Position numbers and translations under genes: made by a program
The notes under the pieces: model-generated
Told to the model about the DNA's origin: nothing
Seen by the model: only the letters and a program-made list of their open reading frames with translations
The model's database searches: none
Shown here: piece by piece, positions 24,401 to 27,400 of the stretch
Numbering within the stretch: the first letter of the stretch is position 1
Layout of the letters: each line of letters opens with the position of its first letter
Assembly (NCBI GenBank): GCA_965112735.1
Contig: OZ218950.1
Coordinates: 2,480,001-2,544,000, forward strand
Direction: 5' to 3'
Source: Phaeosaccion multiseriatum
Taxonomy: Eukaryota > Protista > Ochrophyta, other classes
DNA: 64,000 nucleotides

Positions 24401-27400
24401 CTGTGAATCTACTTTGGGCGGGGGAGGAGGAGGAGGAGGAGGAGAAGAAACGCATGCACACCCATAAGAACAGGTCTACGCAGGGGGTCTCCACGGGCCC
24501 GGCCACTGTCTCCTCTCTCTCTCTCCCTCTCTCCCTCTCCGTCCCTCCTTCCCTCTTTCCATCCTCCTTCTCCTCCTCCTCCTCCTCCTCCTCCTCCTCC
24601 TCCTCCTCCTCCTCCTCCTCCTCCTCCTCCTCCTCCTCCTCCTCCTCCTCCCCCTCCTTCTCCTCCTCCTCCTCCTCCTCCTCCTGCTCCTCCTCCTCCT
24701 CCTCCTCCCCCTGCTCCTCCTCCTCCTCCTCCTCCTCCTCCTCCTCCTCCTCCTCCTCCTCCTCCTCCTCCTCCTCCTCCTCCTCCTCTTCCTCTTCCTC
24801 CTCCTCCCTCCCCCCTCCCTCCCTCCCTCCCTCCCTCCCCTCCTCCCTCCCTCCCTCCCCTCCTCCCTCCCTCCATCCATCCCTCCCTCCGTCCCCTCCC
24901 TCCCTCCCTCCCCCACCCCCCCCCACCGCCCTACCTGCTGTCGCCAAAGAAGTCGTCCGCCAGAGCCTCGAAGACCATCGCACAGCGCTCAAAGTGCGTC
25001 CGCCCCACAAACTCCTTACTCACCACGAGCACTCGGAAATAGCCGTGACGCAGCTCTGAGGGCTTGAGATTTGTGTGCATAACAGGGGCCTTGTCGCCCC
25101 CTCCTCCTCCTCCTCCTCCTCCTCCTCCTCCTTCTCCCCCTCCTCCCATGATGGCGAGCATCTTGTTGCCCTTGGTGTACACCCCTGGGTTGGCGTCTCG
25201 TGCAGCCATGTCCTTCTCTGCGAGCAGCACTGCGGCTTCCTCTGTGCCCGCTGTGCCCACTTGGATGAGGGTGGGCACAATCTCCAGGTCCTCCCTGCGC
25301 TCTCTATTCATTCATCGTTTTAAGTGAAGGAAGGAAGGAACGAAGGGAGGGAGGGAGGAAGGAATGAATGAAAGAAGGAAGAAAGCAAGGAAGGGCCCTT
25401 CTCCTCTCCGCCCCTCCCCTCCCGTCCTCCCCTCCCCCCCCCCTACTCACTTCATACTGTAGATGTAAGCTTCCCACTTGAAGCTCTTGTTGTTGAGCTT
25501 CACCCCTGCAAACATATGCCTCTGCCCGCCCAGCAGCCCTCTCTGGCGGTACCAGTAGCTCTCGTTGCTCACGCGGATCTGCAAGTGCAGCGAAGTGCAA
25601 TCCCACAAACGAACAGTGCGGGTTAGGCTTCATTTTCATCAATCTCAAACCCCCTGTCCCATCTTCTCCCTCTCTTCCACTATCCCTCTCTCTCTCTCTT
25701 CTACTATCCCTCCCTCCCTCCCTCCCTCATTCCCTCACCAGTTTAGCCTTCAACGTTGGGCTCCTCTCTAGAGCCCCCTCTATCCTGGCGTGCAGTGGAT
25801 GCACAACATCCCTACTTCCCTTGGGCTGCCTGTCCAGCCTCTCTGCCTCCGCCTTTCTGTCCGCCTCTGCGGCCCTTCGCTTGGCTTTCCGACTCTCCAA
25901 AGCGTCACAAATGGCATCCAGAGGGTCCACTCCGATTCCAATCTTCTTACTAGATCGGCCGGCCCTGGCGGTAACGCTGGCTACTGTGGCCGCGCTCTTG
26001 AGTATGCTCCGGGAAGTGCGAGTGGCGCCTGTGAGAGCGCCGCCCGTGGGAGTGCGAGCAACGCCACTGTCCCCCCACGCCACGCTCTTGCTGAGACCCA
26101 AGGAAGCGGCTGTCTCAGCTCTTCTGTCTCTTCGTCGGAAGGTTAGAACCCGCTCTGGCGCTCCTACTACTTTTCCTGCTGCTGGTGATGCTGCTGCGGC
26201 CTTCGGCCTTCCGTGTTGCTGTTGCTGCCGTTGCTGCTGTTGCTGCTGCCGCTGCCCCTCTTCACACTGCCGCAATACGCGCACCACCTCCTCGAAACTC
26301 TTCCCCTCGACGGTTGCTCCGTTGACAGCGACGAGCACATCCCCCGGCGAGATGATCCCCTTGCCCGCAGACGGTCCCTCCTCCCCCCCCCCCTCCTCCT
26401 TCCCCTCGCCCTCCCCAATGCCGCTCGGAAGTGCCGAGAAAGCTCTTATGCGTAGTACATGTGCCCAGGGACCGCCTTGTTGCGATCCCTTTGGGACCGC
26501 AGAAGGCTCTAACGGCAGCACAGGCACGGTAGGCATGTCAGCTTTGGTCTCCTCCCCACCGCCAAGCCGTGGTGAAGGCAGGGAGTCTTTACGCTCCGAC
26601 TCAGCCGGCGGTGGCGTCGGTGGCGAAGCTGCTACTGCTCCTTCAGCCCCAATCTCAGGAGTTGCCTCAGGCGGCTTCTTGGTGATGCTGCTCTTGTTTT
26701 CTTCCCTACTGCTGCTGCGGGCCGCCGTTTCCTCTTTGTCCGCCTGCCCTCTACCCTCCTCGTGCGCAAAGCTCTTTTTACCATCCCCATTGGGCTGATC
26801 TCCTTCACTCCGGCCACTTTCCACGGCCAACTGCGGAGAGCGAGGGGCAGTCGCCGAAGCTGGGGTGGAAGGCCAGCCGGGCGCTGCTCCCCCGTTGTCT
26901 GGGACCCATTCGAAGGTGATCCCAAGCGGTCCGGGAGCGAATGCCACACTCACTTCTCTCGCTTCTGGCTCTGGTCTATCGGCGGAGTCCCCGGTACCGC
27001 CGCCGCTGTCGCTGCCACCCGTGCCTCTTCTTCTCTTTCGCCTTGTCTTGAGAGGACCACTGCGGCCACTAGCACCGTCGTTCGGGTGCCAGTTGCTGGT
27101 ACGAGGGTTTCGAGGAGGAGGAGTCCGCCCCCCCTCACCTCCACGGTCTTCGTCCCCTCCATCTCCGCGTGCGTCTCCACTTGCCGGCTTTAGTGAGCGC
27201 TTTCTCCTCCGAAGTCTAGCCGTGCCTTTTCGTTTCCATCCGTCGTCTGCTCCCGCCCCTCTCTTGCTGCTAATGGCGCTACTGCTGCTTCTAGTCAAGG
27301 GTCCCACACTAGGGGATCTCTTAGATAGGCCGCCTCTTTCATTTCCGCCGCCGCTGCTGCCGCTTGTACTGATGCGCCGTTCCAACCTGCTGCTGCTGCG

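Follow-up and report, generated by a model that had tools for sequence, protein, structure and literature searches.

The stretch of DNA analysed here (the window, 64,000 nt) is eukaryotic, with a G+C content of about 58% and introns that are crowded with microsatellites. Reading of the sequence revealed a minus-strand gene in four coding pieces, exon 1 and exons A, B and C, with all GT-AG junctions being of matching phase; the splicing was deduced solely from the GT-AG sites, the phase and homology. The positions of the exons, the introns and the parts of the encoded domain are given in Table 1. The peptide on which the initial annotation was based, where it was described as an AP2-like DNA-binding module placed in a loop of a BolA domain, matched this model of GT-AG, phase-consistent exons exactly.

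Table 1. Coding pieces, introns and domain parts of the minus-strand gene, in window coordinates and in the order of the coding strand.
Feature	Position	Strand	Remark
Exon 1	ends at 25739	-	640 aa, ending ...TLKAKL; donor GT 25738-37
End of exon 1, equivalent of BolA helix alpha-1	25739-25800	-	equivalent in the relative aligns to BolA profile 4-34
Exon A	25451-25578	-	2 nt over at the 3' end; donor AA/GTGAGT
BolA strand 1, start of exon A	25549-25578	-	NESYWY identical in the relative
Conserved loop motif (relative: ENRRLMGGEKHM)	25513-25548	-	resembles the canonical BolA loop with the His opening strand 2
AP2-like module, first half, with 2 nt of the K codon	25451-25512	-	custom AP2 profile 6-25, 11.6 bits
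Intron splitting the AP2-like module	25295-25450	-	156 nt, GT-AG, (GGGA)n-type repeat; kept in genomic contigs
Exon B	24935-25294	-	acceptor of the preceding intron CAG/G
AP2-like module, second half (short strand and helix of about 16 residues)	25183-25294	-	AP2 profile -1.9 bits
Variable spacer, Gly run from (GGA)n	25051-25182	-	without counterpart in the relative
BolA core (loop His, strand 2, 3-10 helix Phe, helix 2)	24935-25050	-	PF01722 profile 27-60
Intron after exon B	24277-24934	-	658 nt; long (GAG)n/(GGGA)n microsatellite; contigs break at the repeat
Exon C, BolA strand 3 region	24183-24276	-	12/20 identities with the relative (E 3e-9), which has Asn for the His; donor GT 24182-81

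The lysine at the SMK/EDLE junction results from a split codon, AA/G, that spans exons A and B. An alternative donor inside exon A (GT 25503-02) was dropped, since its use would shift the frame of exon B. The length of the intron between exons A and B is a multiple of three, yet a TGA is met at the donor if the intron is retained, so that retention would truncate the protein after ...YIYSMK. Four sequencing runs contain the locus, in each case as genomic contigs that retain the introns, whereas RNA runs containing it were not found; the contigs at the locus are DNA only and show no splice joints. Short-read contigs were seen to break at the very long (GAG)n/(GGGA)n microsatellite (24412-24936) in the intron after exon B as well as at a (GGA)n run (25089-25148) inside exon B, which encodes the Gly tract.

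Exon 1 contains a PDZ domain (Pfam PDZ_6, E 2e-5). When its 640 residues were used in a word-index protein search, only fish PDZ proteins were returned, the length window of that search excluding an orthologue of several thousand residues. At 12485-23506 on the minus strand, several short open frames with IQ-like motifs were observed (Pfam IQ 14-19 bits, below cut-off), together with a C-terminal C-x2-C...C-x2-C piece. These pieces are consistent with a putative single, very long gene.

The BolA assignment was examined with the Pfam profile PF01722 (cut-off 25.7 bits) and with a custom profile made from 35 bacterial sequences. Exon B alone matched positions 27-60 of the Pfam profile at 20.9 bits (E 4.4e-4), below the cut-off, and scored 18.1 bits with the custom profile; a BolA scan of the whole genome listed three canonical BolA genes and, at 21.2 bits, this locus. 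A search with exon B against 1.84 billion representatives gave one real match, P0004 (146 aa, E 9e-4), referred to as the relative, which passed the Pfam cut-off at 28.9 bits and whose upstream exon contributed a further 12.6 bits at profile positions 4-34. The second match of that search, P0003, was rejected as low complexity only; this protein, 380 aa long, is built of repeated SAP-like units (LSGAELRRRCGEANVPTYGTREQ...) and has Gly runs. The spacer of exon B yielded spurious low-complexity matches throughout the genome.

Among the hallmarks of BolA proteins are a His or Cys in the [H/C] loop, N-terminal of strand 2, an invariant Phe in the 3-10 helix, and an invariant C-terminal His that serves as Fe-S or metal ligand (PMC7538681). 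The loop His and the invariant Phe were found in both proteins (RHGYFRV...SKEF in the window, TSHFRV...SKAF in the relative). The window reads ERC in place of the RHR motif and CHLL further on, as had been noted initially; the relative has ERS for RHR and, at the position aligned with the His of CHLLL, an Asn (SNLLL). The BolA assignment holds, and the domain is degenerate. Since RHR is lost and the relative lacks the invariant His, this BolA domain is probably no longer a glutaredoxin Fe-S partner; both changes argue against its binding a monothiol glutaredoxin via a bridged [2Fe-2S] cluster. The gating of DNA binding by metal or redox state that had been considered conceivable for the locus is weakened as well, because with Asn for His in the relative metal gating is not conserved.

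Between BolA strand 1 (NESYWY) and the BolA core lie about 100-105 extra residues, made up of a GG-x-basic-H-M loop, a W-x-A-x-I-Y strand, the variable spacer and an amphipathic helix that closes with RDA-x-PG. This long insert lies between strand 1 and the His-Phe start of strand 2, within the [H/C] loop as defined in PMC7538681, so that the proposed nesting in the loop was borne out. The relative is encoded on L011, a metagenome contig of 2.2 kb, and has its insert at the same place. The first exon of L011 reads ...LHVELHNESYWY ENRRLMGGEKHM QIETIP and is followed by a GT-AG intron; the second comprises ...DVHWHASIY, 20 acidic residues, MKVLMEG, ...SEIKAFLAAEAACRLRDASPG, 14 residues and SHFRVLIVSKAF...ERSALVFEALA; the third is HLGELASNLLLDMRTPSQW. 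The order of the parts is that of the window, namely NESYWY, GGxxHM, W.A.IY, helix, SHFRVLIVSKAF and LLLDMRTPSQW, and the blocks common to both are NESYWY-xx-R-x-L-x-GG-xx-HM, W-x-A-x-I-Y and E..A.L.AE.....RDA-x-PG. The two loci do not agree in the positions of their introns, and the spacers are not shared. In the relative, the alignments to the Pfam (4-34) and custom (11-45) BolA profiles both reach through GGEKHMQIE.

Because one relative carries the insert too, it is no quirk of the window's genome, and because the Pfam alignment of the relative's upstream exon runs through GGEKHMQIE, the insert is conserved in position and, in part, in sequence. A paralogue in the window's genome was not found, the locus being single copy. 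Scanning metagenome loci for further relatives gave only a canonical bacterial BolA (L013), and feature searches of the ESM Atlas for relatives gave no usable match. Downstream of the BolA-like domain of the relative, L011:1620-2140 is strikingly rich in His, with many H-x-H, HH and DH repeats; this stretch may be a putative metal binder, and a counterpart to it was not found in the window.

AP2 likeness was tested exon by exon, with single exons as queries. With hmmscan at E values up to 10, the AP2 profile matched neither of exons A and B nor the second exon of the relative, in which the putative strands 2-3 and the helix are uninterrupted. A scan of the 67-Mb, 22-contig genome with PF00847 (gathering score 33.3 bits), where E values of 0.5-0.9 are already reached at 16-17 bits, recovered genuine ERF-type AP2 domains elsewhere, and the insert locus was not among the five places listed. 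One open frame of this genome, L001:1018-2190 (G000:C7, around 3761172), encodes a good AP2 domain of ERF type (33 bits with Pfam), after which comes a stretch resembling the MutS N-terminus (...GDFYEAYGVDA...).

For a custom AP2 profile, seed collection by words yielded 0 and 2 proteins, and seeds were taken from viral and bacterial contigs instead. The resulting profile of 160 domains (4 of eukaryote type and 156 from viral and bacterial contigs) is biased towards EEAARAYD-type and against divergent AP2 helices, because its seeds were found via such words. As a control, an AP2 exon of the same genome that is outside the training set (L003) scored 46.5 bits, and the genuine ERF-type AP2 domains of this genome ranged from 46 to 77 bits. 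Exon A reached 11.6 bits (positions 6-25); for exon B the score was -1.9 bits, and no piece of the relative exceeded 0 bits. The score of exon A was attained by 1 of 20,000 shuffles of that exon and was the top six-frame match to the profile in the 64 kb, the runner-up being at 7.4 bits. Profile comparison with hhalign gave P = 8e-4 for exon A (probability 24%), P = 0.046 for the exon B profile (probability 1.2%) and P = 0.1 for the relative, with colinear alignments; these single-test P values overstate the AP2 match, because it had been picked by eye beforehand. Resemblance to AP2 was confined to the strand 1-2 half in the window.

The helix half is normally the best-conserved and strongest part of an AP2 domain. 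Of the AP2 motifs, GV, W-x-A-x-I and GT-x-GTEEAA are present in the window, while LG-x-F and AYD are absent; the relative has W-x-A-x-I only and lacks GV, GT-x-GTEEAA and AYD. The AP2 likeness comes down to GV and K-W-x-A-x-I, both in a single species, together with a T-E-E-A-A helix start of generic kind, and the two sequences, where they agree, do not agree on the AP2 core. The module has a net charge of -3 in the window and -5 in the relative, compared with a mean of +4 for AP2 domains (n = 160, 7% at or below 0), and A, N, E and Y stand opposite basic consensus positions of the AP2 profile. Searches of PDB sequences with each half found no AP2 domain and only a chance SNARE match (E 0.9), and BLASTP of each half against an AP2 domain of the same genome gave nothing significant. 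AlphaFold2 models of P0004 (pLDDT 36) and of exon B alone (pLDDT 48) were both too low in confidence to use; only the helix recurred in the predictions, at residues 18-33 of the low-confidence exon B model.

We consider it most probable, at roughly 0.6, that the insert of about 100 residues is a lineage-specific, structured element in the [H/C] loop of a BolA-like domain that has degenerated. The host protein, from an alga of stramenopile type, would be very large and multidomain, arranged as a low-complexity N-terminus, the PDZ domain, the BolA-like domain and then probably IQ motifs. The insert would pack against the BolA sheet or extend it and provide a protein-contact surface, a fold and a role that we infer, in a host domain that is itself losing its Fe-S features. 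As AP2 identity failed in every profile test run, we take the insert to be a decoration specific to the lineage and do not regard it as a new transcription factor; being acidic and lacking the AP2 core in the relative, it does not merit the name of an AP2 DNA-binding domain. Against the lineage-specific reading count the strand 1-2 half of the window, which resembles AP2 above chance within the window, the colinearity of both halves on the AP2 template and the bias of the custom AP2 profile against divergent helices; an AP2-like fold, with a three-stranded sheet packed on one helix, is conceivable, and the comparison covers a single relative.

The initial annotation proposed a functional AP2 domain whose DNA binding could conceivably depend on metal or redox state via the BolA ligands. 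Its BolA-like domain and loop insert stand; AP2 identity and DNA binding are not supported. The motif likeness of the window (GV, KW-x-A-x-I, GT-x-GTEEAA), the His residues that flank the insert (RHM, RHG) and the CHLL kept in the window agree with such a domain, but the relative does not keep its motifs and has Asn for the invariant BolA His, RHR is ERC or ERS, the module has an acidic charge that few AP2 domains share, the basic consensus residues are replaced and no profile lends support, which makes a gated AP2 domain highly improbable. Less far-reaching is a true but eroded AP2 domain, exon-shuffled into the BolA loop, in which the basic residues that contact DNA are gone and the fold now has a structural or protein-binding use. 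The exon A score, the low hhalign P values of the two colinear halves, a strand-strand-strand-helix order that is plausible in the window and in the relative, and the presence in the same genome of ERF-type AP2 domains fused to unrelated proteins, as in the AP2-MutS open frame, are in line with it. Against this stand the missing Pfam match, a helix half that scores below zero where AP2 is usually strongest, the loss of GV, GT-x-GTEEAA and AYD in the relative, and the fact that half-domain matches of 11-12 bits are expected many times by chance at genome scale; we regard this origin as unlikely. If it were correct, an eroded AP2 fold nested in the BolA [H/C] loop, common to a few stramenopile-type algae, would be the first AP2 fold within another domain and one re-used beyond DNA binding, which we hold to be slightly more doubtful still.

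The insert might also have arisen when part of the domain, from the BolA loop through strand 2 to the following helix region, was duplicated internally and then diverged, in which case FAGV would be a copy of the start of strand 2 and not AP2 strand 1. Such an origin is suggested by the same BolA profile positions being matched twice, since GGEKHMQIE of the relative aligns to positions (Pfam about 27-34, custom 39-45) that are later matched by SHFRVLIV, and by a pair of 14-residue stretches that align internally in the window. This internal alignment has 5/14 identities and is not significant (E = 1.1), however, the relative is without any internal alignment, and exon A of the window alone scored -1.1 bits against the custom BolA profile, so that duplication appears improbable. 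About equally improbable is that the module is in part an artefact of the gene model, the quoted peptide not being made owing to other splicing or a lack of expression. The restriction of the locus to intron-containing genomic contigs would fit such an artefact, as would the failure of BLASTP to align KWEAYIY with HWHASIY of the relative; but both junctions have strong canonical sites of matching phase, the exon B frame is 42% identical to the relative with the helix included, and the W.A.IY strand and the helix share one uninterrupted exon in the relative.

If the AP2 reading were true, the locus would encode a metal- or redox-gated transcription factor of new design, and the evidence points away from this. 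The locus then comes down to a BolA-like domain whose ligand loop accommodates a conserved module of about 100 residues nested in it, while the Fe-S hallmarks of the domain are being lost. It is a modest case of a domain that decays and is re-used, here within a giant scaffold protein of an alga, with relevance mainly to BolA structure and algal gene annotation. The locus also illustrates that a half-motif matched by eye can reach a single-test P of about 1e-5 and yet fail once a relative is compared.

Compared with AP2/ERF domains (PF00847), the likeness is confined to the window, where G-V...K-W-x-A-x-I aligns to AP2 strands 1-2 and T-E-E-A-A, at the start of a helix, recalls the AP2 helix; the insert differs in having no Pfam match, a helix half below zero, no LG-x-F and AYD and an acidic character, and the relative shares none of the AP2 motifs of the window beyond W-x-A-x-I. 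The likeness to the BolA family (PF01722), and to its BolA_H subgroup, lies in strand 1 with (D/N)ES, the loop His directly before strand 2, the sequence H/Y-F-R-V-L-V-V-S, the invariant Phe (SKEF), helix 2 and the C-terminal L-x-x-x-T-P-x-x-W, features that follow PMC7538681. From canonical members the domain differs by about 100 extra residues in the [H/C] loop, by ERC or ERS for RHR, by the C-terminal Asn of the relative, and by being embedded in a very large PDZ-containing protein and not forming a small stand-alone one.

Known BolA fusions include the plant SufE1-BolA and the Grx-BolA proteins, in which BolA is joined end-to-end with Fe-S partners and the ligands are intact. These share with the present locus the use of BolA as a module within a larger protein; in contrast to them, the present domain has eroded ligands, contains a nested module of its own and is accompanied by a PDZ domain and, probably, by IQ motifs.
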